Assembly: GCF_021869535.1 (NCBI RefSeq)
Contig: NW_026262690.1
Location: forward strand, 115,072,001-115,136,000
DNA: 64,000 nt
Source: Mytilus californianus
Taxonomy: Eukaryota
Reading direction: 5' to 3'
Of this stretch, positions 7,504 to 32,053 are shown one piece after another; position 1 is the stretch's first letter; each line of letters starts with the position of its first letter. Under the pieces are notes generated by a model. The model ran no database searches. It worked only from the letters and a program-made list of their open reading frames with translations, and had not been told where the DNA came from. The position numbers and the translations under genes are program-made.

Positions 7504-9216
7504 ATGGCATTATCTAAATCTTTCCAGAAGGGACAAATACCTATATGTTGTCAGTTGTGTGAAGAATCAAGTGAGATCAAATGGAAATGTTTACTGTGTG
7601 ACTTTCTCTTGTGTACAAAATGTCAGAAACTTCATAAAAAGGTTAAATCTACCGACCAACATACTATTATCGATATTAAAGACATTGCTGTATATCAGCA
7701 ACAAATCAAGGATAATCCTGATTTCAGTAGCATTCCATGTGAAATTCATAGTGGACAAAACTGTTGTTTATTCTGTCAGACCTGTGATGAAGTTGTCTGC
7801 CCTCTGTGTATTGCTAAAACTCACAATAAACACAACATGATTGAATTAGCGGAAGGATATAAAATAACTCTCAAGACAATAAAAACTTTTAATTCTGAGC
7901 TTGAAGTGAAATTAACAGACTATGTAAAAGGAATAACTAAACTGCATTCCCTCAAATCTTTTGAAGACGCTAAATATGAGACAGAAAAGCAAAAGATTCT
8001 GAGTCGAGAAAAAGTCTTGACGGAAGAAGTTGAAAAACATACAAAAAAAATTTTGAAAGAACTTGATAAGAGAAAGGAAGATGTGAATAAATCAATAAAT
8101 GATGAAGAAGATAAATCACACAAGATAAAAGAAGATCTAGAATTCCGAAAAGGAGGCTTAACAAAAGCCCAAGTTTCTGTCAATGCTTGTGAAGTTTTCA
8201 GTGCATTAAAAGAGGAAAAAACAGCAAGGAAACAAATTGTAGAACCAGCCAATACGTATGTTCAAAGACTGCCCCAATATATACCAGGAAAAATGAAGAT
8301 CCAAGAGGCACTACATGGAGAACTAACTGAGCCTGATGATGATTATGCACAGGTACAATATGGAGCTAAAGTTATAAAACAGTATAAAACTGGACTAAAA
8401 CTTGTAGAACGTTTGGTTTGCAGTAATGATGGAACATTGTGGATAGGTTATACTGAAGACAATATCATACAGAAAATAGAACTTTCAAATGGAATATTAA
8501 ATATTGTACAGGAGATACAGGTAAATTGTGCTGGTATGGCATTATTACCATCAGGAGACTTACTTATATCTACTGCAGAGTCAAATCTTAAAATACTTTC
8601 TCATACCACTGGAAAAATAACCAATTCAAAGTATACTGTAGAACCCTTAATAACTGGAGAAGTCCATATGATCCGGGATGAAAAGATTGTAATCAGAGCA
8701 AGAAAAGAAGGACCTGTCTTCCCTGTTAAAGGTCCAAGACAAGTGGTTTTGATGGATATAGATGGAAGAATAGAGAAGGTGTATGATTTAGACAACAATG
8801 GAAAACCTCTCTTTTCTGCTCCACAAAGAATAACATCAGACAACGACAATAACATTTATGTACTGGATACTCTTACTAAAGAGTGGAATGGTAGGATAGT
8901 GGCTTTAGATAAAACCAACAGAGTAAGATGGATATTTCGTGGAAGTCCAAATGTCATCAAAGAAAATACATTCAAACCACGAGATTTAATTAGTACACAA
9001 TTAACCAATATTATCATTACAGATATGGATAGCGACATTATTCATATTGTCAACACTTCAGGACAGTGTATTCATTACATGAATACTAAGGATGAGTTAG
9101 GTATTGTGTTACCATACGCTGTAGACATTGAAAATACAGGAACACTGTACATTGGTTGCAATTCATGTAAACCGAATGGAACCAATTTATATACTGTTCA
9201 GTTTTCAGGATTCTGA
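7504..9216 (+). CDS. Intronless RING-less TRIM-like protein, tandem paralogue of 989-2704, 570 aa
   Basis: The ATG at 7504 has the same TTCAGCATAATGGCATT context as gene 1 (the ORF track starts at an upstream GTG). It has the same B-box1/B-box2/coiled-coil/propeller order and ends in the similar YTVQFSGF*. Confidence 0.9.
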   Translation: MALSKSFQKGQIPICCQLCEESSEIKWKCLLCDFLLCTKCQKLHKKVKSTDQHTIIDIKDIAVYQQQIKDNPDFSSIPCEIHSGQNCCLFCQTCDEVVCPLCIAKTHNKHNMIELAEGYKITLKTIKTFNSELEVKLTDYVKGITKLHSLKSFEDAKYETEKQKILSREKVLTEEVEKHTKKILKELDKRKEDVNKSINDEEDKSHKIKEDLEFRKGGLTKAQVSVNACEVFSALKEEKTARKQIVEPANTYVQRLPQYIPGKMKIQEALHGELTEPDDDYAQVQYGAKVIKQYKTGLKLVERLVCSNDGTLWIGYTEDNIIQKIELSNGILNIVQEIQVNCAGMALLPSGDLLISTAESNLKILSHTTGKITNSKYTVEPLITGEVHMIRDEKIVIRARKEGPVFPVKGPRQVVLMDIDGRIEKVYDLDNNGKPLFSAPQRITSDNDNNIYVLDTLTKEWNGRIVALDKTNRVRWIFRGSPNVIKENTFKPRDLISTQLTNIIITDMDSDIIHIVNTSGQCIHYMNTKDELGIVLPYAVDIENTGTLYIGCNSCKPNGTNLYTVQFSGF

Positions 9217-9262
9217 ACTACTGATTCTTATTTTCACATTTCAGTTTTAAACTGTTTTGAAA

Positions 9263-9408
9263 TACTGGAAATTCAGAAATTATTGCGTGCACTTATTATT
9301 GCGATTTTTTCATTTTAGACTAAAATGCGATTTTAATTTTTGTGATATTAACCCTGTTGCATTTTTCGCAATAATAAAAACATCGCAATAATTTCTGAAT
9401 TTACAGTA
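9263..9408. mobile_element. TA-flanked MITE (Tc1/mariner/pogo-type non-autonomous)
   Basis: TIRs TACTGGAAATTCAGAAATTATTGCG / CGCAATAATTTCTGAATTTACAGTA. Confidence 0.8.
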
Positions 9409-9832
9409 CATATTAATTCAATATTTCAAATAAAATGTCTTTGTTTAAAGAACAAGTATTTGACATATTTTTTTGGCAAATTGCAACAACAAGAATCATT
9501 TTGATAATCAATTTGCATATTATGTTTTTCTTTTAGAAATGCAATTTACGTTGAGAAATTAACTGCCCTATGCAATGGATTATTCATGTGTTAAGATTGT
9601 CAAAATCATTATCAGTCATTCAAGATTGCATCATTTTTGCTGATACATAGTATTCTAATGCAACATTGTTTGTAACGTTCATTTTGATTGGATAATGTCA
9701 CCAATTTTCATGACATCAATTCACAATTGATGCTATGAAAACATACGCGCAAGCGCAGACGACATATCACAAATTTTGAATGTATGATTTGACGTTGTTT
9801 TCTGTCAGTTTCATTAGAATGGAGATAACAAT

Positions 9833-20600: not shown

Positions 20601-23600
20601 TTGAAAACCTCAAATCAAATACAATAGCTTTGAAAAGTAGATTCAGCTTTCATTATTACAATTTCTAAATTATCTGAGGTAATCCGAGTGGGCATGGATA
20701 TACTGACCACAGTGAGCAGCAAATACACTTAAACTTTAGACTAACTTATTGAACTTGTTATTTTGTATATATCTTGTGACTTGATTTTTACAGTTATTTT
20801 GTAATTATCTTGTAACTGGATTTGTACAGTTATAATGTATATATCTTTTACTTTGCTTGTACAGCTATTTTGTATATATCTTTTACTTTGCTTGTGCAGC
20901 TATTTTGTATATATCTTTTAAAATACTTGTAGTTATTTTGTATATATCTTGTTAGTCGACTTGCAGTTATTTTGTACAACTTGTCACTTGATTTGTAGTT
21001 ATTTTGTATATATCTTGTGAATTGGCTTGCACAGTAGGTTTGTATATATCTTGTACTTACAGACGTAGACTCTTTAGGCTTGGGAACACCTAATATTTCG
21101 TAAGCATATAAAGTTTCCTCTAAAATCTTGTCATAACTAATACTTATAGGTATAACCATGATGTCTGGAATGTGGGCTTTAAAATAGGGTTCTAATGACG
21201 CAGATAACATTCCTGAAATAAAAGTTTACAAAATTGGTTAATTCTCTAATGATGACATAGTTGAAATACTATTTTTGTATTCTTAAATACTTCTTTTCAT
21301 TTTCTAATAATGACATAGTTGAAACACTATTTCTGTATTCTCTTAACCTCAGATTTGCTTTTGCACTAACTTTCTCTTCATAAATTATTTTAAAAAATCG
21401 ACCAAAGATCTACAAAATTTCCGAAATTAAATTTTCCCACTGTACAATTTTTTGTAAATAGTACTGCTTATTTAATACATAATTGAAAAGAATAAACCAA
21501 TATTTTTTTTAAACCACATTCAAGTTAACATGATAACTCGATAGCTACGGAAAGTATAAAGAACCATTGTGCAGCCCACAAGGTTGTCTGTGGAAATTTG
21601 TCGAGGCAATTGATAGACATAAATCATCTACGTCAACTAACACAACAGCTTTAAAATTGCTTAATTCATTTGCATTTGTAGTAAGATAAACTTATAAGGA
21701 TGCAATAGATTTGTTTTTCAGTACAACATACCATTGACAAATTATTCAAAAAACATCAGGTCAGGACTATTAAGAGTTCATTCTTCCAATGAGGATTGTT
21801 TGAAGAGAGTGGGATTCCTCAAAAACTAGACAGTTAATTTATATATATGATTGATCGTCTAGAATATAACTTAAAGTTCAGTATAATTCTTATCTAAAAG
21901 ATTCAATGGTTCACTCTTTGCACTTCAATTTCCTTCCTCAGTCAACTAACAACCATAAATTTACGAAAATTATTTTCTCATCTGATGGGTTGCTGCCGAC
22001 TTGAAGTTTACTGAGAGGTGGAAGATACAAAAGAAATATTTAAACTTGAAAACAAACTGACATTGCTATGGCAAAAAGTGACATAGAGTTCTTCTTTAAA
22101 ACCTACCAAATTTTGGAGCATATGACTTTGACGTTCTGCTTCTGGTTCCCTCAACATAAAACTCTATAGGATGATCTCCATTAACCAACTGAGACTGGAC
22201 ATATTCTGTAAATACTGCCCAGTATAACATGTCATCTCCAAAACTTCTCCGAATATAAAATGCACCGCTGTTTCTCAACAGCCATCCAAAAAATTTCATA
22301 CCCATAAAATCTGAAAATAAATATTCTATTTTGTATAAACTGGTAAATATTTCAATTTTAATGAAAATTCGAGAACAACTTTTGGTTGGATATTGAAAAA
22401 GAAAAATTAAAACGACCATTAAATTAAATATCCTTTTTTGTTAAATCTAATCTTAGTTTATAAAACAAATATATTTATAATTTTTACATGATTACTTACA
22501 AGTATTTTTACTCATGTAAATAAAAAAGTGTGGTATATTTTATCAATTAGAATAAAGCCGTTTTATGTATTTTTCCCATTAAAATTGTGTTATATTTTTT
22601 CTGTGTGACAAAATTAGTTAAACATTTTCCTATGTAAATATACAAACCCATAGCAGCAGCAATTACAGGCAGTGGAAGATCATAGGAATAGAACACATAT
22701 GACATCAAAAGAAAGTCAAAATAACTTCTATGACTAGGCATCAATAATACTGGGTATTCTACTAACATCTCTCTGACCTGATAATAAAGAAAAGTAGGTC
22801 CAAGTCAAAATTACTTCTATGGCCTAGGCATCAGTAACAGAGGGTATTCTTTCAGAATCTCCCCCCTCCCCCTGTAAAATAGGAAAAAAACATTTTTATT
22901 TGACCTACATTCAAGAAGACTAATTTGATAGTAATGTCACTTCCTTTTTTCTATTTTCTAATTGTCTAGGACTTACAAAATTGGTATATTTTACCTTCAT
23001 ATAATATACCAAGTAATACATTTTTCTCCTTAGAATGTGTTAAAGAAACAATTGTTTTACCTTTTGTATTCCTTCTGTATTGACATAAACTCTTTTAAAC
23101 AGTGATTTTAAAACTTTGACAAGAAACATTGCAAATCCTCGAATGGCTCCCATGCTCAGATTGTGGGACATTTCCTGCATTACTTCTTCTGCTTGCTTCC
23201 ATACCTCTTCAATGGGTAATCCACTTTCTGAACAAACCTGGAATAAAAAAAGATTGACCCACTATAACATTAAATTGTAGAAGTTAAGACATCATAGCCA
23301 AATATAACAAGAATGTGTCCATAGTACACGGATGCCCCACTTGCACTGTAGTTTTCTATGTTCAGTGGACGGTGTAATTGGGGTTAAACTCTATTTCGAC
23401 AGTAGAATTACTAGAAAGATAATATCATAAGAAACATGTGTACTAAATTTCAAGTTGATTGGACTTCAACTTCATCAAAAACTACCTTGTCCAAAAACTT
23501 TAACTTGAACAAACGAACGCACAGACTGAAAAACATAATGCCCCATAGCATGTAAGTGGGGCATAAAAAGACGGAACAAACAAATATCAATCCTGGATTA

Positions 23601-26600
23601 TTATCCATAAACTATATATCTGGTTTTTATATTGATTTGGCCTAAGAAAGTCCGTTTCATCTTCACATGTTCATTCATATTTGAATTGTACGGCCTTTTG
23701 CCTTGCAATTGCATTTTAATAAACAGTGAAATGCTTGAAAAGGGTAAATTTTGCACTTTAAATGGCTACCCAGCATGTGGCAGTTCTGTTTGACTCCAAT
23801 CTTAATTGACTAGAATTACCAGCTGAATGTTGATGGAACTCTCTAAGCACACTGACTTCCACCACTTATAAAAACAGATTGCCACGATATAACCAAAACT
23901 ACTGAATTTTGCGTAACAGTAACACAAACACTTCAATCAATTACACTAAAACAGAAACATACCTTTTCAACGGCATATTTGACACGATCACTGTGCATAA
24001 CATGTTTTCTGATCTCATCGGGAGTTCTTGGTTTGTTGTATTTGTACTTTGGTTCTTCTCTCGTCCTGAATGACCAAACAACATCACTTGAATGTCTTCT
24101 GTCCTCCAAAATATCTTCGTAAATGTCTTTCTGTCGAGCAGACACTAGCCTTGGATTATCTGTAATTACAAGGAGAAAATATTAACACTCAAAGAAAAAA
24201 ATTGGTCCATCTCAATATACATGATATTATACATGTAGTATATGTCAAGTGATGGACTATACTCGAATTGAGGTATAATCTATCGATTAATGGTTATTCC
24301 TGACCTGTTTACATTGCCATGTTTAATCTGTCATGTTCTTACAATATTTTGTACATAAGTTTCTAGGAGTCTTTAAAGATACTGCATACTAACAACCCTA
24401 GCTTGGATCCCAGGCCATGATAATATATCCAGGAACAAAATAGCAGACCAGTTTGTGAAAGAGGCTGCAAAGAAGGCCTCATTACTTAATGACCAATTTA
24501 ATATAATAACAATGTCAGATGTAAGAAGTGCAATCAAGATGTCTACAACACTGAAATGGCTAAGAAGATCATCATCTTGATGGCCAATCTGTTGGGAGGG
24601 TTATTCAACTTGACGCACCTGAAATGTAACCTCAAATACATGTAGGAAGAATATTGTCAGAACTAGACATCATTGAGATGGGTACCGTGCCATTTCTGTA
24701 GGCCCACTGTGAATAATGTGTGGTAAAGATATTGTATCTTTACAATAGGACATAGGGTTGTCAACTGAAACCAAAGTTTTTGACCTTGACCTTTGACCTA
24801 GGAATTTGTACATACATTATGACATACCCTCTTGTGTTGGTTAATATACATGTCAAGTATAAACTTTGAAATCCTAATGGTTCTCAAGATATAGAGCACA
24901 CATGATCTTTGCCATAGGATGTATAGGTTTGTCAACTGAAACTAAATTTTTTGACCTTGACCTTTGACCTAGGAAGTTGTACATAAAAATAGAACGCTCC
25001 ATTGTTCTCGTGATATTAGCTACTACTCATGATGATTGACAGGAATGAATGAATGCTGATGCTCCAGGAAGGACAGTTGTAATTAAGCCATTTAAATAAA
25101 GTTACATTTCTTTATTCGGTCGATGTCAACAATGTTTTCTTGTTAAAAGATAAATATAGATCTTTAATATAACAAAGTGTGTGGTTTTTTTTAAAAGTTC
25201 TCCTTCGAAATGACACAAGATAAAATAATTGCTAAATATTAAAATAACATTCAAACCATCATTTCCAACTTTTTTGTTACATTCGAAATATTCATGTACC
25301 AAGTTTTTCCTGACTGATATACGTGTGTTATTTTGCCTTTCTCATTTTGTGTATCGGTAGTGTAGTTTGTTAAAATATGTGTATGCAGTACAAACAAATT
25401 TTGGTGATTCCTTCTTTATTTTTCAACATCCTGTGTTTATTTCCCAACAATAAAATATTCATGTACCAAGTATTTACAATTCTTCAATATAAGTATTTGC
25501 GGTTCTCGTTTGGAGTTTATTTGTGTATTTTGTAAAGTTATTTAAAAGACTTGTGTTTAGTTTTTCTGTCGGTGATTCTTTATACCGGATTCATATTTTG
25601 AAATAATTGCTACTGGACATTTGCTTGTTTGAAGTTTCACTTTATTTTTTGCACTTCGCTAAACATTACAAAGATCAAAATGTAAGATGACTTTACACAT
25701 TTAATTCATTTATAAAACAACATTTATAAACATGAATAATTGAGATACATAATATTTAAAACATTTTATAAAGTCACATTATATTCATCAATGTTTTTTT
25801 AAAACTTTCTGTGCTGGCTGGACTGGTCTACAAAGGTACTGGTTTATTTTTTCCACAACCATAGCATGGTAGGCAGACTCTGTATTAACTGACGGAAATA
25901 GGGGGCCACGACGTATCTTTTGATGATCCCTTTCCTACTGTCGTCCAGTGGTCTCTAGCTTTACCACCGCCCCTGTAAGAATAGTATACACAAAACTGGT
26001 CTGCTGTGAAGAGCTCTGGGTAGAAATGTTTGAGTAATAATACACCAAAGGCACCTGGGTTATTGCCACTGCATGACAGTCTGCTCAGATCGTCCTCGGA
26101 AAGACACACAGACTCTGGTAGGTCATTGAACAGATGCACTGGAAGAATTCTGCGATGTAATGTTGGTGTCAGTGGCTGTGGTAGTGGTGAGTCTGGGAGT
26201 TGTGTAGTTGTTGGGGACAGTGGTTAATCAGGCAATACTGGATGAAATCTAGGTGTAGTAGGAGTTGATGGCATTGGTGGCAGAACCAGAGTTAGCGGTA
26301 GTGGCGTAACATGTTGTGACTTGGAGACCAGTTCTTTTATCATGTTGCCTTGGGCAGTGATCATTCGTTCCATTTCAGCTAGTCTTGTGTTGGAGATCGT
26401 AACCTGCTTTTCCATGGCTTATAATGAATGCTGAATGGAAAATGCAGTAGGCTCCTTGTCTGTTGGCGTTGTCTGGGTTGTTGCTGATGTTGATGTTGGC
26501 GGTGTTGGTGGCCGACATATTGGCGATGGTGGAGTTGGAGCAGAGAAAGATGTAGAGAGACTGATGGCGATCTGTATGTGTAAGGGTCGTCGATACCGTC

Positions 26601-29600
26601 CCTGATGCTGAGCATCACAGCCTCCTGTCTGCCTTTCTTTGGTTTACTATCATTGCGACCAATTCTTTTTCTTATCAGAAATGGCGAATTTGTTAGGGAT
26701 TCAGGTGATTCAGGTGTTGAAGGCAATGAAGGTGGTGTTTGAGTACTAGAAAGCTCTGTTTCTCTGCTCTTCATTGTTAGGTAGTCTCCAGTGTCTAGAA
26801 CCTCTGCTGTTTCAGGAGTATCTGAGCTGCTGCCATACGTCACTGGATAGCGCTCGCCGATACGGACACGGCCTTCTATGTTTACTTTGACTCTGGGACA
26901 TGCATATAATGTGCCATCATCATATCTGACAAGAAAGTGACTGAACTCTCGAGTTGCAGCTCTAGTAGCCATTTTGAGTATACTGATTTATAAAATTTTA
27001 AGTCATATTTATATCATATTTCTAGATTTATAAAAAAAACAACTCAGTATAGTAAACACTGTTTGAAGTCTTAAAACAATAAATACAAGAAAAACATACT
27101 TTGAAGTTAAACTAAATATGAGCACTTTTCAGGGCTTTTAACAAAGATATGGCTTGTTATAATACGCTTTGATCATTTGTTATAATTAAATTATCATTCA
27201 TTTAGCTCTATTTAAATTATTAATTGATTAATTATGCAAATTATAGTTTGATAATCTTTAATTAATTTAAATAGTAGAATCACTGTCTAATGAATGATAT
27301 TGTTTTAGAGCTTATCTGTAATTTATCATGTAAATGTATAATTTAAAATGCAAAATATTTTTTTATAACTTGATATTTTCTCCAAATTAAAGATATTTTT
27401 TAATCAATTAGAAGAAACCTAATGCACATTTATTCATTCATTCTTATCGGATGTATTAAATATTATTTTATTACTTATATATCTTTAACCTTGGTGAGTT
27501 ATTTTATTACATATTAAATATTACATATTAAATAAATTAAGCTTTTATTTTTCCCACGAATGAGTTGACATGCATGTATACTAGATTGGTCAAATGATAT
27601 CGATAACAGGTGCGACCTAGACAGAATGGCCCCACGTCGATATTTCATCCAATACACGTCATGGCTAGTGTTCATTTAAAAAGCATCTTGCAATTTTCTA
27701 ACCATTATAGTTTTAAATTGACTATGCCAAAGTTCAAACTTACACATCACAATTATTGCTTTATACAGACAGAGCTGGCCTGATCATGCCATCGTCAGAA
27801 AGATAGCTGAACGAGGCATAAATGTTACATGGAGTAATGTTAAGCATGTTATAAAAAAGTACCAATCCGGCAAAATAGGTTACGAGAATTTATTGAAGAA
27901 AGACCAGAAACTACCAACTTTAAAACTAATTACCAATAATGACGTAAAATTTGTAAAAAAATGTGCTTTCAGAAAAACCAACCCAGACATCTACTGATAT
28001 CTGCCGTCTTTTGTCCAAAAAGGGTACACAGGTCAGTAAGTCAACAGTACATAAAGTTATTGGTGCAGCTGGTTACACCGCAACATCGCCAAGATATGGA
28101 CAGATGGTACGTGATGCTAACAAAGTAAAAAGGGTCGCGTTCGCTAAAGAGAACATTGCCAACAATGACAACTTCGACAATATCATCTTCACTGATGAAT
28201 GTTCTGTTCAGCTTCATGACAATAAGATCGTCATCTACCACAAAAGAGATTCAGTCGCACCAGTATTACCTAAACCTAAGCACCCGTTGAAGGTACACGT
28301 TTGGGCTGGAATAAGTCGTCGAGGAACGACGAGTATCCTAGTATTCGAGAATATTATGCATCAGCATTTTACATTAACTCTGTTTTGGTGTTCGGCCTGA
28401 TTCCATTCATTAACTGGGTGTACCCTGATACTCATCGCTTTCAACAAGACAACGACCCTAAACATACTTCAAATGCAACTAAAGACTTTATGAAGCAGCA
28501 TAGTATAAACTGGTGGGATAATTGGCCAGCAGAAAGTCCCGATTTTAATCCAATTGAGATGGTTTGGAGCATGATGAAGTCAAGATTGTCTAAAAAAGAG
28601 CCAAGGACAAAAGAAGATCTAATTAATGGCATAAAGTCAATTTGGAGAGAAGATATGACAACTGCAATATGCAATTATTTCATCGACCACATCTTCAAAG
28701 TCATGCCAATAGCGGTTGTGATAGGTGGACGAGCTACCGGAGATCTACCCCAAAAGATTTTTCCATAGAGATCAAGCAGAAAGTCCCTCCACTATTTTGA
28801 TACCAAATTAACGACGCCAGAGTACCAGCTAAAAGTTACCAGCTTGAAGCTGATATGAAGATGATTGATAGTCAACATCTATTTAAAACAGCTCTTTTAA
28901 GGGCTACAAATATTATGCGAAAAGAGTCTAAAATTGTTGTCATCATTAACAAATCAAACTAAGGTTTCTTCCAACTTCATATTACCTTTGCCCCTTTTCT
29001 CTCACTCATCCTCACGCTAATTTACTTTGGTAATTTAAAACAATTTCCCAGTAGAAATTTAAAATGATTTTTTTTCTCAATAAAATAAAATCATCACTTC
29101 ATTTGTTTCAAACATTTAATTTTCATCTTTTAACGAAAACAAAAAACTGTTTTTAAAATGTTAATTACTGTCGTGTTAAATTCTTGTCTAAATATTAACT
29201 GAAAAAAAGACTTTTTTATAACACCTTCCCTAATTTTAGCCTAATCTATTTCTGTCTAATATTCGATTAAATTAAACATCTATTATCAGTTGTCAAATGA
29301 AATTAAATTGATCACATTACCAGAAACAAAAAGAGCACACAAGTCATAAATCTCAAACAATAAAACAAATTAATTAATGAAACACGGGTTGATTGTACTA
29401 TAAATAATGATGGGAATTCAAACAAACCAATTTACTTTGTAGTAATTTCAAGAATCAATTGATTAGAAAATTTTAAAAATGAGGTGATCATTACATAATA
29501 AAGTCGGTAATCAGTCGTAATTATCTAAATAAAAAACAGTTTGAATTATTTGCAGCAAAAACTTTTGATCATATCAAAGTTAAGTTGATCTGTTCATGGA

Positions 29601-32053
29601 TTTTATACTACATGTATATATCCTTCCGTGATTCGTTTTACTTGTACGCTTTTTAAAAGGTCTTGTCGAGATAAAATATTTTCAATTAATACAAACAACT
29701 GACATTTTTATTAGAAAAAAATCATATCTCGAGGTTAAATATTTCTTTAAAGCTGCGTCCGAAAACTATATATAAGTTATATATATAATTGGTATTGAAC
29801 ATTTATTTAAACATGAGTGAGATTACATCATGTCACCAAAATGAAAAAAAATAAAACTTTCCGACTTCAATTTTAAGAAAACATCACGGTAGCACAAGCT
29901 CTAAGAGGCGCGAAAATGTATAAATACATGTAACTGTAAACAGAAATGAACTGTTTATAAGGGGTCAATTGTTTGATTTGCGGATATTGACTGACAGGTA
30001 ATATCAGTTGAGGCACTAGAGGTGAGCGTGGTATTGTTGAATAAATGAATGAACTACAGGAAAATGAATAATAAAGTAAAAAAATCTGAAATAAACTACT
30101 TGAAATTTTTTCATTTCGAATTTATCAAATATTTTATATAAAGAAAAAACTACATTGCTTTAAAATGTAATTTTACGATCAGGTGGACAAATTACAATTT
30201 TTTTAAAAAAAGTCTTCAAGTAAATATTTTTTTACTTATTGTGACAATACATTTTTACATGTACATGTATCATCACTTTTAATTAAATCTGCATACAGGT
30301 AAAATTTCAATCAGCTACAAATTGATTTACGACCTTCCATCAGGTATTACACAGATGATATCAAACCAGGTGCTAATTACGTTCAGGTAACTGCCCGACA
30401 GTCCGGCCTCTTGCTGGAATCCGACATATCTAGTCATAAGTCAGACTACGTACTGTACATGTAGGAAGTTGTACAAATATTATGACACCCTCTGGTGTTG
30501 GTTAATATATACATTTTTGTATGTCAAGTATAAAGTATGAAACTATCACAGTTCTCTAGGTATAAAGCGGACACAATTTGTTACGGACGGACAGACAGAC
30601 TGATCACTTTATGGCTGGCCCTATTAAAAACATCCCATAAGTGGGCAAATAAAAATGTTAACTTATCAAAGTTATCTTTTGAAATTACATACATCCATGA
30701 TTTGGCGTAAATCAATACGACCATTTTGGACCAAGAAGTCTTTTTAACTTTTTTGGATTCGAGCGTCACTGATGAGTCTTTTGCAGACGAAACGTGCCTC
30801 TGGCGTAAATACAAAATTTTATCCTGGTATCTATGATGAGTTTATTTCACACTGGTCTAACTTGTCTTTAACTGGTCTTGATTGTCTTTTAATTGTTCTG
30901 AGCAGTCGTGATTTTCACTTGTGATAACTGTCAAATGTTATGTCATGATGTACTACATCAGGAATTATTTAAATGCATTCAAATGGTGTTTAATGATGAA
31001 TATATACTTTAATTTCACTCAATACCTCTTAAGTCTGTAAAACCTCACAAACATGCCACATTTTATGAGGAAAGTGGGCTTTGAGGAGGATAGGAATACC
31101 CTTTACCGTCAGGCGTTACCGTTATTTTTGGAAAAAAATTAACGTGATTCGTCAAAATCAGTCAATTTTTTTATCGTCTTAAAGAAAGTGTACATTTTAT
31201 CGTCATGCACCAAAAAATACTGTAAACGTCATTTGGCAAGATTTTTTAACGTTACTCGTCATGAAGGTACCCCCATTACGACCCTCTTTGAGACAACTCA
31301 TGTCAGCTTGTGTTTTGATAATCAGGAATTTCATTTCATAATAAACATTATACATTTAATTCCAAGCTGTTAAATTATATAACAACAACCAAAATTTAAT
31401 AATATGATTAAATAAGTTGATTAGTTAATAATCAACCAATAATCACACAATCAAAGGAATTTAATATATTAATTAGCATGGTAATTAAGAAATTACATTC
31501 ATATTTTGGTCTAAGTTTTCATTAAAATCTAGTATAAAATTCAAGTTATTCAACTTTTTTTACCAAAAAAAAATCATAAAACATTCGTATTTTGAATATA
31601 TTTTTAATACACCTTATCGCTATTTATCCGCCATTACTGGACATAACACAAGTTCCCGTAAAATTTTGACGTCATAATAGAAAATATCTGACGCCACAAT
31701 GGAAAAGTGATTGTTGTATGACGTCAAAAGTTCGAGCGGGACAGATTCTCGGGTCAAGCGGGAATAGCGATAAGGTGTATGGTACGAGTTCTATTTGGTA
31801 CGACTTCCCAGTGGTACGAGTTTACGTTGGTACGAGTTAACTTTTTTAGTACGAGTTTACGTGGTACGAGTTTACAATGGTACGAGTTAACTTGCTTCCC
31901 TACATCAGTACATCATCTACATAATGAGTACATGTAACTTGTAACTTATTGTATGATTAAAGATTAAATAAGAGAGAAATTTGATGAATGTGAAGTACAG
32001 AATTTTCTTTTGATACCTTGTTTAATCCACGAATTCCTTGACTGGTCTGACAT
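14628..32053 (-). CDS. GNPAT: Glyceronephosphate O-acyltransferase (DHAP acyltransferase), multi-exon, C-terminus not located in window
   Basis: Phase-consistent GT-AG exons: 32017-32053 (open to the acceptor at 32099), 23963-24159, 23061-23237, 22648-22777, 22107-22310, 21061-21212, 20176-20306, 19101-19321, 16972-17226, 16462-16541, 14628-14768 (1725 nt, 575 aa). Acyltransferase motifs [31 protein letters not shown] and [30 protein letters not shown], plus [10 protein letters not shown], are recognisable as GNPAT. Confidence 0.92.
14997..15912. mobile_element. ~0.9 kb TA-flanked non-autonomous DNA transposon (pogo/Tigger-like ends)
   Basis: TIRs TACCGTAGAAAGGCTTGTATAGTCCGC / GCGAACTATACAAGCCTTTCTACAGTA, with internal GGGGTGCGGACTAT repeats. 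Confidence 0.8.
18096..18285. mobile_element. TA-type MITE
   Basis: TIRs TACTGTAAACCAACTAATTTTCG / CGAAAATAAGTTGGTTTACAGTG; related to the copy at 41041-41259. Confidence 0.75.
20760..21055. repeat. Intronic minisatellite, ~40 bp units
   Basis: About 7 imperfect copies of CAG(T/C)TATTTTGTATATATCTT...; this repeat explains the repetitive tail of the ORF at 20848-21210. Confidence 0.75.
22801..22871 (-). pseudogene. Degenerate duplicate of the acceptor and 5' part of GNPAT exon 22648-22777
   Basis: The minus strand reads TTTTACAG|GGGGAGGGGGGAGATTCTGAAAGAATACCCTCTGTTACTGATGCCTAGGCCATAGAAGTAATTTTGACTTG, which aligns to [15 protein letters not shown] with indels. Confidence 0.75.
23307..23568 (+). 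mobile_element. Short HINE-like element
   Basis: Starts AACAAGAATGTGTCCATAGTACACGGATGCCCC and ends in the hairpin ATGCCCCATAGCATGTAAGTGGGGCATAAAA. Confidence 0.6.
24398..24571 (+). mobile_element. Non-LTR retrotransposon RNase H fragment
   Basis: Open frame [27 protein letters not shown]..., matching the RNase H motif WIPGH..I.GNE.AD.LAKEA. Confidence 0.7.
25788..26972 (-). pseudogene. Decayed BEN-domain protein gene (N-terminal beta-rich domain, S/T/P linker, coiled coil, C-terminal BEN-like domain)
   Basis: Joined from ORFs 26379-26972, 26224-26415 and 25885-26139 across about 3 frameshifts and 2 in-frame TAA codons. The C-terminus reads [20 protein letters not shown]...[49 protein letters not shown], fitting the BEN helical pattern (LL..LF...S..G...K.PLD...I...+....IN..LR). 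Confidence 0.65.
27724..28858 (+). pseudogene. Tc1/mariner-superfamily (DDE_3-like) transposase, DD35E, inactivated
   Basis: ATG at 27724; frameshifts near 27770, 27960 and 28350; TAG at 28766. Motifs: HTH-like N-terminus, [38 protein letters not shown] and [16 protein letters not shown]. There are 35 residues between the second D and the E. Confidence 0.9.
31608..31779. mobile_element. MITE
   Basis: TIRs ACACCTTATCGCTATT / AATAGCGATAAGGTGT; a second copy lies at ~32805-32970. Confidence 0.75.
31781..31895. repeat. Minisatellite of the GGTACGAGTT core
   Basis: Seven copies of (G/A)GTACGA(G/C)TT spaced 15-19 bp apart. Confidence 0.85.

Follow-up and report, generated by a model that had tools for sequence, protein, structure and literature searches.

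Elements of the Tc1/mariner type are the standard example of transposons with a single gene, and tools such as Sleeping Beauty are built on them. Two genes within one pair of terminal inverted repeats (TIRs), the second encoding a DNA-binding partner of the transposase, are found in PIF/Harbinger elements, for which the requirement for the partner has been demonstrated. The L31 group of IS630/Tc1/mariner elements, known from bivalves and cnidarians, has a DD37E signature and a position outside Tc1, and its members reportedly carry a second open reading frame (ORF) of unknown function. Among elements with other spacings of the catalytic residues, the DD35E Traveler family is restricted to vertebrates and has a length of about 1.5 kb, a single ORF of about 340 amino acids (aa) and CAGTC or CAGCC termini (PMC7093834), and the DD36E lineage TLEWI from bivalves is low-copy and without TIRs, its introns being located in the transposase gene (10.1101/656579). 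Here we describe a locus of the mussel Mytilus californianus, located in a stretch of 64,000 nt (contig NW_026262690.1, positions 115,072,001 to 115,136,000; below, the window), where a block at positions 24984-30461 holds a decayed Tc1-like transposase gene and, head-to-head with it, a decayed second gene (below, ORF2). We estimate at about 0.8 the probability that the block is a dead, left-truncated copy of a mollusc DD35E Tc1-like family of about 6.2-6.5 kb, bounded by TIRs and containing two divergent genes separated by an AT-rich spacer. The genes of the family encode a Tc1 transposase of about 381 aa and an ORF2 protein of about 400 aa, composed of a putatively Tudor-like barrel, a basic linker resembling a nuclear localization signal (NLS), a coiled coil and a BEND3-type BEN domain.

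The general layout of the block was confirmed as given in the original prediction. The minus-strand gene extends from the ATG at 26972 to the stop codon at 25788 and is colinear with P0003, an intact 398-aa protein of M. galloprovincialis, which aligns with it in four pieces and three frames (tblastn). The plus-strand gene at 27724-28858 is a Tc1-type transposase, recognized in pieces by the Pfam profiles HTH_Tnp_Tc3_2 (5.7e-11) and DDE_3 (6.3e-9) and retaining, in three frames, 69-83% identity to an intact 381-aa paralogue (tblastn). The two genes diverge from a spacer of 751 bp (predicted as about 750 bp) with the GC content of 19-27%, which presumably contains a bidirectional promoter. The decay of the genes is similar indeed, each of them having three frameshifts and two in-frame stop codons, and the window copy itself can neither transpose nor code. 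The block also splits a host repeat, as was claimed: a 171-bp tandem repeat ends at about 24983-24985 and restarts at 30462. What did not hold is the view of the 5.5-kb block as a full unit, since the window copy is truncated on the left and has no TA target-site duplication (TSD). The features are as follows.

24752-24983, no strand: host 171-bp tandem repeat, left flank (repeat search and sequence; the last 14 nt, 24970-24983, recur at 30462-30475)
24984-25787, no strand: left arm, non-coding, downstream of ORF2, truncated (homology to other copies begins at 24984)
25788-26972, minus strand: ORF2 pseudogene with the putative Tudor-like barrel, coiled coil and BEN (tblastn with P0003, three-frame translations)
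26787-26939, minus strand: ORF2 N-terminal beta barrel, possibly Tudor-like (AlphaFold model with pLDDT about 90, Foldseek and VIA; mapped via tblastn with P0003)
26317-26436, minus strand, approximate coordinates: predicted long helix (coiled coil) of ORF2 (helix 189-228 of the P0003 model, mapped)
25824-26049, minus strand, approximate coordinates: BEN part of ORF2, with two frameshifts inside (Pfam BEN, P0003 residues 316-391, mapped)
26973-27723, no strand: AT-rich spacer between the divergent start codons (GC 0.19-0.27)
27724-28858, plus strand: Tc1-like transposase pseudogene, DD35E (Pfam, tblastn, alignment with SB100X)
28859-30455, no strand: right arm with the right TIR, ending in GTACTG (81-94% identity to at least eight other copies)
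30456-30461, no strand: TA (30456-30457) and 4 nt, CATG (30458-30461), at the right junction (sequence)
30462-30573, no strand: restart of the host tandem repeat (the first 14-16 nt duplicate 24970-24985)

That the two genes belong to one mobile unit, as had been proposed from the window, is borne out by complete relatives, in which both lie head-to-head within one TIR pair with TA on each side. The DNA search, which covered the M. californianus genome (1.65 Gb), revealed two diverged copies of this kind, of 6193 bp (contig C132) and 6288 bp (C35), with both genes between perfect 24-nt termini (TA+CAGTACAGG...); the element termini begin with CAGTAC after TA. In M. galloprovincialis, the copy at locus L056 is 6462 bp long and has 48-nt TIRs that are 94% complementary and flanked by TA; both its ORFs are intact (transposase, 381 aa; ORF2, 419 aa), between them is a spacer of 1132 bp (25% G+C), and the non-coding arms measure 1.3-1.6 kb. 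TIRs with flanking TA are also present in copies from the limpet genus Patella (see below). The spacer of complete relatives, 1132-1223 bp, is longer than the 751 bp observed in the window.

As the left TIR is missing from the window copy, the unity of its parts could not be proven from the window alone, where an unrelated BEN pseudogene might by chance lie beside an independent Tc1 insertion. Chance juxtaposition is refuted by the TIR-bounded copies and by the pairs found in other species. In particular, both arms are common to the window and other copies (81-96% identity), and a 3.7-kb stretch covering both genes is 78% identical to another copy from M. galloprovincialis (L057).

Besides complete copies, the M. 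californianus genome contains internal-deletion derivatives (C132:103.02 Mb, C93:4.99 Mb, C154:93.33 Mb and C1:115.27 Mb) that keep both ends, the left arm being joined directly to the distal part of the transposase gene or to the right arm. A copy in contig C88 breaks off within the spacer, with both ORF2 and the left TIR missing; it retains an uninterrupted 381-aa transposase ORF (L033:5955-7100; G000:C88:108603954-108605096). A fragment of ORF2, 75% identical and comprising the BEN end only, is observed with no transposase at three loci (L035:5844-6609, L036:5120-5889, L037:5353-6122; contigs C13, C92 and C93), where it is part of a larger repeated unit with other common ORFs.

The head-to-head arrangement, expected to recur elsewhere if the genes form one unit, was found in M. 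californianus, M. galloprovincialis and the oyster genus Saccostrea. Six-frame searches of the M. californianus genome yielded 75 ORF2 matches and 111 transposase matches. The ORF2 matches represent about 60 distinct loci, about 29 of which have a divergently oriented Tc1 match no more than 5 kb away, compared with about 0.03 linked loci expected by chance. The number of unlinked ORF2 loci is an upper bound, as 108 of 780 transposase candidates were scored. Two pairs are convergent. The solitary loci that were inspected are deletion derivatives or fragments. The linked subfamilies extend down to 29-45% identity in ORF2 and 44-66% in the transposase, relative to the query pair (those on contigs C104, C89 and C57 are known from coordinates and partial loci), and the two identities co-vary over 26 linked loci, with a Spearman coefficient of 0.82 for loci that are not independent phylogenetically. 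Hence ORF2 and the transposase behave as one unit in mobility, divergence and decay.

A word search detected ORF2 homologues in M. galloprovincialis, M. coruscus and M. edulis, and a profile search in 1.84 billion proteins produced 244 matches, most of them to the BEN domain only. Full-length matches come from Saccostrea cucullata (430 aa) and Patella vulgata (408 aa, an identical protein on five chromosomes). In Saccostrea, ORF2 contains a 265-bp GT-AG intron, and a decayed Tc1 transposase gene lies head-to-head about 1 kb upstream. Patella vulgata has five copies of 5.77 kb, 99.7-99.9% identical, with Tc1-like termini and in different host contexts; TA is adjacent to at least one end in all five of them and to both ends in three. 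The Patella element has thus moved recently as a two-gene unit.

The gene order in Patella is different. Its ORF2 consists of exon 1, encoding the barrel, and exon 2, encoding the coiled coil and BEN, on either side of a 1.7-kb GT-AG intron, and the intact transposase gene is antisense inside this intron (L064:8001-10931, minus strand, approximately 8448-9668; also in L061-L063 and L065). The pairing therefore survives rearrangement of the gene order. Since the transposase gene is nested antisense within the ORF2 intron, transcription of ORF2 must run antisense through it, and this nesting might serve as regulation built into the element. A diverged Mytilus subfamily (L050:1492-3206 and L052:1618-3213; contigs C133 and C104) has ORF2 as two separate ORFs with about 650 nt between them. 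The position of the split is that of the Saccostrea and Patella intron, which suggests an ancestral intron lost in the subfamily of the window copy.

On the right, the window copy has a true terminus of the Tc1 type, with the final CTG (up to 30455) followed by TA (30456-30457) and CATG (30458-30461). The right arm is common to at least eight other genomic copies, all of which end in ...ACTG next to TA and have different flanks beyond it. At the left edge (24984) the window copy is truncated. Copies from C93, C154 and C88 are homologous to each other further to the left, for about 750 bp or more (about 751 bp in C154), and this extension ends in an inverted copy of the right terminus, that is, the left TIR; as judged by this comparison, about 750 bp and the left TIR have been lost from the window copy. 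An initial impression that several copies share both window ends was rejected when BLAST was repeated with flanks and demonstrated the truncation of the left end.

The window junctions are not a canonical cut-and-paste footprint. Fourteen to sixteen nucleotides of the host repeat (24970-24985) recur at 30462-30477, with CATG located between the right TA and the duplicate; TACATGT after the right end is common to the window and the C154 copy (L014). The lack of the left TIR, the 14-16-nt host duplication and the four filler nucleotides suggest that the insertion was aberrant or repair-mediated, or that a rearrangement followed later. It is possible that the window copy originated by ectopic repair or as a template-switch copy of a donor, or that it was rearranged later. 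Microhomology-driven deletion at the left junction (GGAAGTT in the host and in the element) was considered and rejected, as the bases did not fit.

The second protein had been proposed to be a BEN protein, and both the profile search and the predicted fold support this in intact relatives. Seven homologues, intact or nearly so, score 29.7-38.9 bits for BEN (PF10523), the gathering cut-off being 23.2; in P0003 the domain occupies residues 316-391 (31.3 bits). Three frameshifted ORF2 pieces of the window gave no Pfam match at E<=1; the BEN domain is therefore established on intact paralogues, to which the window pieces are related by their identity to P0003 (72-91% per piece). In the AlphaFold model of P0003 an N-terminal beta barrel (residues 13-60) is followed by a helix of 40 residues (189-228) and a helical domain (286-387; predicted local distance difference test score, pLDDT, about 80-85), and the linker is disordered and basic, with an NLS-like RKRK...KPKKAR motif. 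Foldseek matches the helical domain to the DNA-bound BEN4 and BEN3 domains of BEND3 (7v9g, 7w27, 7v9h; probability 1.00, 32-34% identity) and to the BEN domain of BANP (probability 0.96-0.97).

The barrel has no Pfam match among ORF2 homologues. When modelled alone from 14 sequences (pLDDT 82), it is most similar, according to both structural aligners, to the Tudor domains of ARID4B, RBBP1 and KDM4A/B/C. The scores are weak (Foldseek probability 0.87-0.99, TM score about 0.5, E 0.26-1; VIA-align Z 5.9-6.8, with the next unrelated match at 4.6), so that the model is consistent with a Tudor-like fold, if weakly. Domains of the Tudor or 'royal family' type are SH3-like barrels of five strands, and those that read methyl-lysine have an aromatic cage. 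As a whole, the domains predicted for ORF2 are those of a nuclear protein that oligomerises and binds specific DNA sequences. In the 419-aa ORF2 of the L056 copy the coiled coil is lengthened by an in-frame tandem triplication of 21 nt (QGNIIKE x3; L056:8643-8718).

The ratio of nonsynonymous to synonymous divergence (dN/dS) of ORF2 is 0.07-0.25 where synonymous divergence can be measured, and that of the transposase is 0.16; in deeper ORF2 pairs dS is saturated, with dN of 0.24-0.5. ORF2 is thus under purifying selection, about as stringent as that acting on the transposase.

We give an even chance to ORF2 being an element-encoded nuclear accessory factor that binds DNA or chromatin. Such a protein would dimerise via its coiled coil, its BEN domain would bind specific DNA (the long arms or the spacer of the element itself, or target sites), and the barrel may read chromatin. 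It may help the transposase to find, or to assemble on, the element arms or target chromatin in a Harbinger-like manner; alternatively, it may repress the shared divergent promoter, which would be a form of self-regulation. The probability of an accessory role is split roughly evenly between assembly or targeting and promoter repression. A bolder and rather doubtful possibility is a true two-component Tc1/mariner system, where a Tudor-like and BEN protein would be obligatory or strongly modulating and would tether the transposase to specific DNA or chromatin; it would be the first in the superfamily.

Several observations weigh against the reading of the block and its second gene given here. 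The window copy has neither the left TIR nor a pair of TA duplications, many ORF2 matches have no scored transposase nearby, and the scores behind the Tudor assignment are low (E 0.26-1, Z below 8). Moreover, a repeated candidate binding motif common to both arms was sought and none was found, the only repeats being the TIRs, a 260-bp tandem duplication and the spacer palindrome. Finally, a search for RNA support, covering about 6% of one RNA-seq run, gave only nine partial reads for the C132 copy, which speaks neither for nor against expression.

The empty search for binding sites and the few reads would also fit ORF2 being a passenger, either a host BEN gene that a Tc1-like element captured once and that plays no part in transposition, or a selfish addiction or regulatory gene that acts only on the host. 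Tc1/mariner transposases normally need no partner, and the 381-aa transposase ORF of the C88 copy remains intact in the absence of ORF2. Passengers, however, usually decay fast, while ORF2 has been kept under purifying selection across subfamilies down to 29% identity, in bivalves and in a gastropod, and is conserved despite the rearranged gene order in Patella. We consider a passenger unlikely and favour an accessory role in the element.

The family belongs to the IS630/Tc1/mariner superfamily: DDE_3 and the paired helix-turn-helix (HTH) domains score above the cut-off both in the window pieces and in intact paralogues, and complete relatives have TIRs and TA. The transposase matches the catalytic domain of SB100X with 1e-17, with one extra residue between the second D and E yielding DD35E in Mytilus, while the Patella transposase is DD34E (hand count). 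The DD34E spacing of Tc1 sensu stricto is thus present in Patella (34 residues) and differs from that of the Mytilus copies (35). The paired HTH and DDE_3 transposase, the TA|CAGT... termini and the TA duplications of complete relatives are shared with Tc1 and Sleeping Beauty. These elements, however, are 1.3-2.4 kb long, compared with 6.2-6.5 kb here, and the mussel family differs from Tc1 by non-coding arms of 1.2-1.6 kb, the conserved second gene and, in Mytilus, DD35E.

The original prediction had allowed for a match to an already described family, and the L31 group is a candidate, since it reportedly has two ORFs as well and inhabits bivalves including Mytilus. L31 is listed from M. galloprovincialis and other bivalves (PMC7325037). 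Membership was rejected by the described signature and position of the group: L31 is DD37E, near Tec/TBE and outside Tc1, whereas the spacing here is 35 or 34 and the transposase has canonical Tc1 motifs, matching the Sleeping Beauty catalytic domain as given above. The signature sets the family apart; a relation of its ORF2 to that of L31 is possible, and we regard membership of the family in L31 as very improbable. No description of a BEN gene in a Tc1/mariner element was found in a literature search, the reach of which did not include the reports on L31 ORF2.

Traveler resembles the mussel family in the DD35E spacing and the TA TSD. Of the traits in the description that set Traveler apart, the spacing of catalytic residues is the one that matches, and membership in Traveler was rejected by size, gene content, termini (CAGTAC here) and host. 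TLEWI is similarly a mollusc Tc1-like lineage with introns inside the element; identity with it was rejected, since here TIRs are present, the transposase gene is intronless, and the intron is in ORF2.

The best functional analogy is PIF/Harbinger, with two genes in one TIR pair and a DNA-binding partner, though its transposase is from an unrelated superfamily, the TSD is 3 bp, and the partner is of the Myb/SANT type, in place of BEN. The partner requirement demonstrated there may extend to ORF2 by analogy, the indirect evidence being the linkage of the two genes, their co-divergence and the purifying selection. In turn, ORF2 resembles the BEND3, BANP and Insensitive-type proteins in its C-terminal BEN, related to the BEND3 domains that bind specific DNA, and several BEN repressors also have a coiled coil upstream of BEN. 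It differs from them in being transposon-borne and in having a single BEN domain and a putative Tudor-like barrel at the N-terminus.

The spacers contain inverted repeats. The spacer of the L056 copy has a near-perfect palindrome of 63 nt (L056:7301-7363; 30-nt arms, 97% complementary, with a 3-nt loop), the sequence of which is not conserved in the window spacer; the latter has its own 23-nt inverted repeat (27208-27274). On the host side, a dispersed repeat lies just to the right of the block (window 30740-30847). It forms a tandem array with a period of about 364 bp at L056:14944-16143, 4 kb from the M. galloprovincialis element, and is also present near the C93 and C95 copies. To the left of the block, a minus-strand exon-like match to the acyltransferase domain (PF01553, 33.6 bits) at 22099-22302 fits the family of GNPAT, in an intron of which the block had been placed; the match is at the family level only.

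The window copy is a fossil, and the interest is in the family, which is a variant within known Tc1-like transposons and not a new kind of system. A mollusc Tc1 lineage has kept a second, selected gene, predicted to be of the DNA-binding type, through deep divergence. Full copies that are nearly identical persist in Patella, and in Mytilus there is a copy with both coding regions intact, so that three questions become open to testing: can a Tc1 transposase depend on a partner protein or be steered by it, how do DNA transposons achieve self-regulation, and do animal BEN-domain regulators of the BEND3 type have a transposon origin? As for the latter, transposon-borne BEN genes could be a source of host BEND3-type BEN genes.

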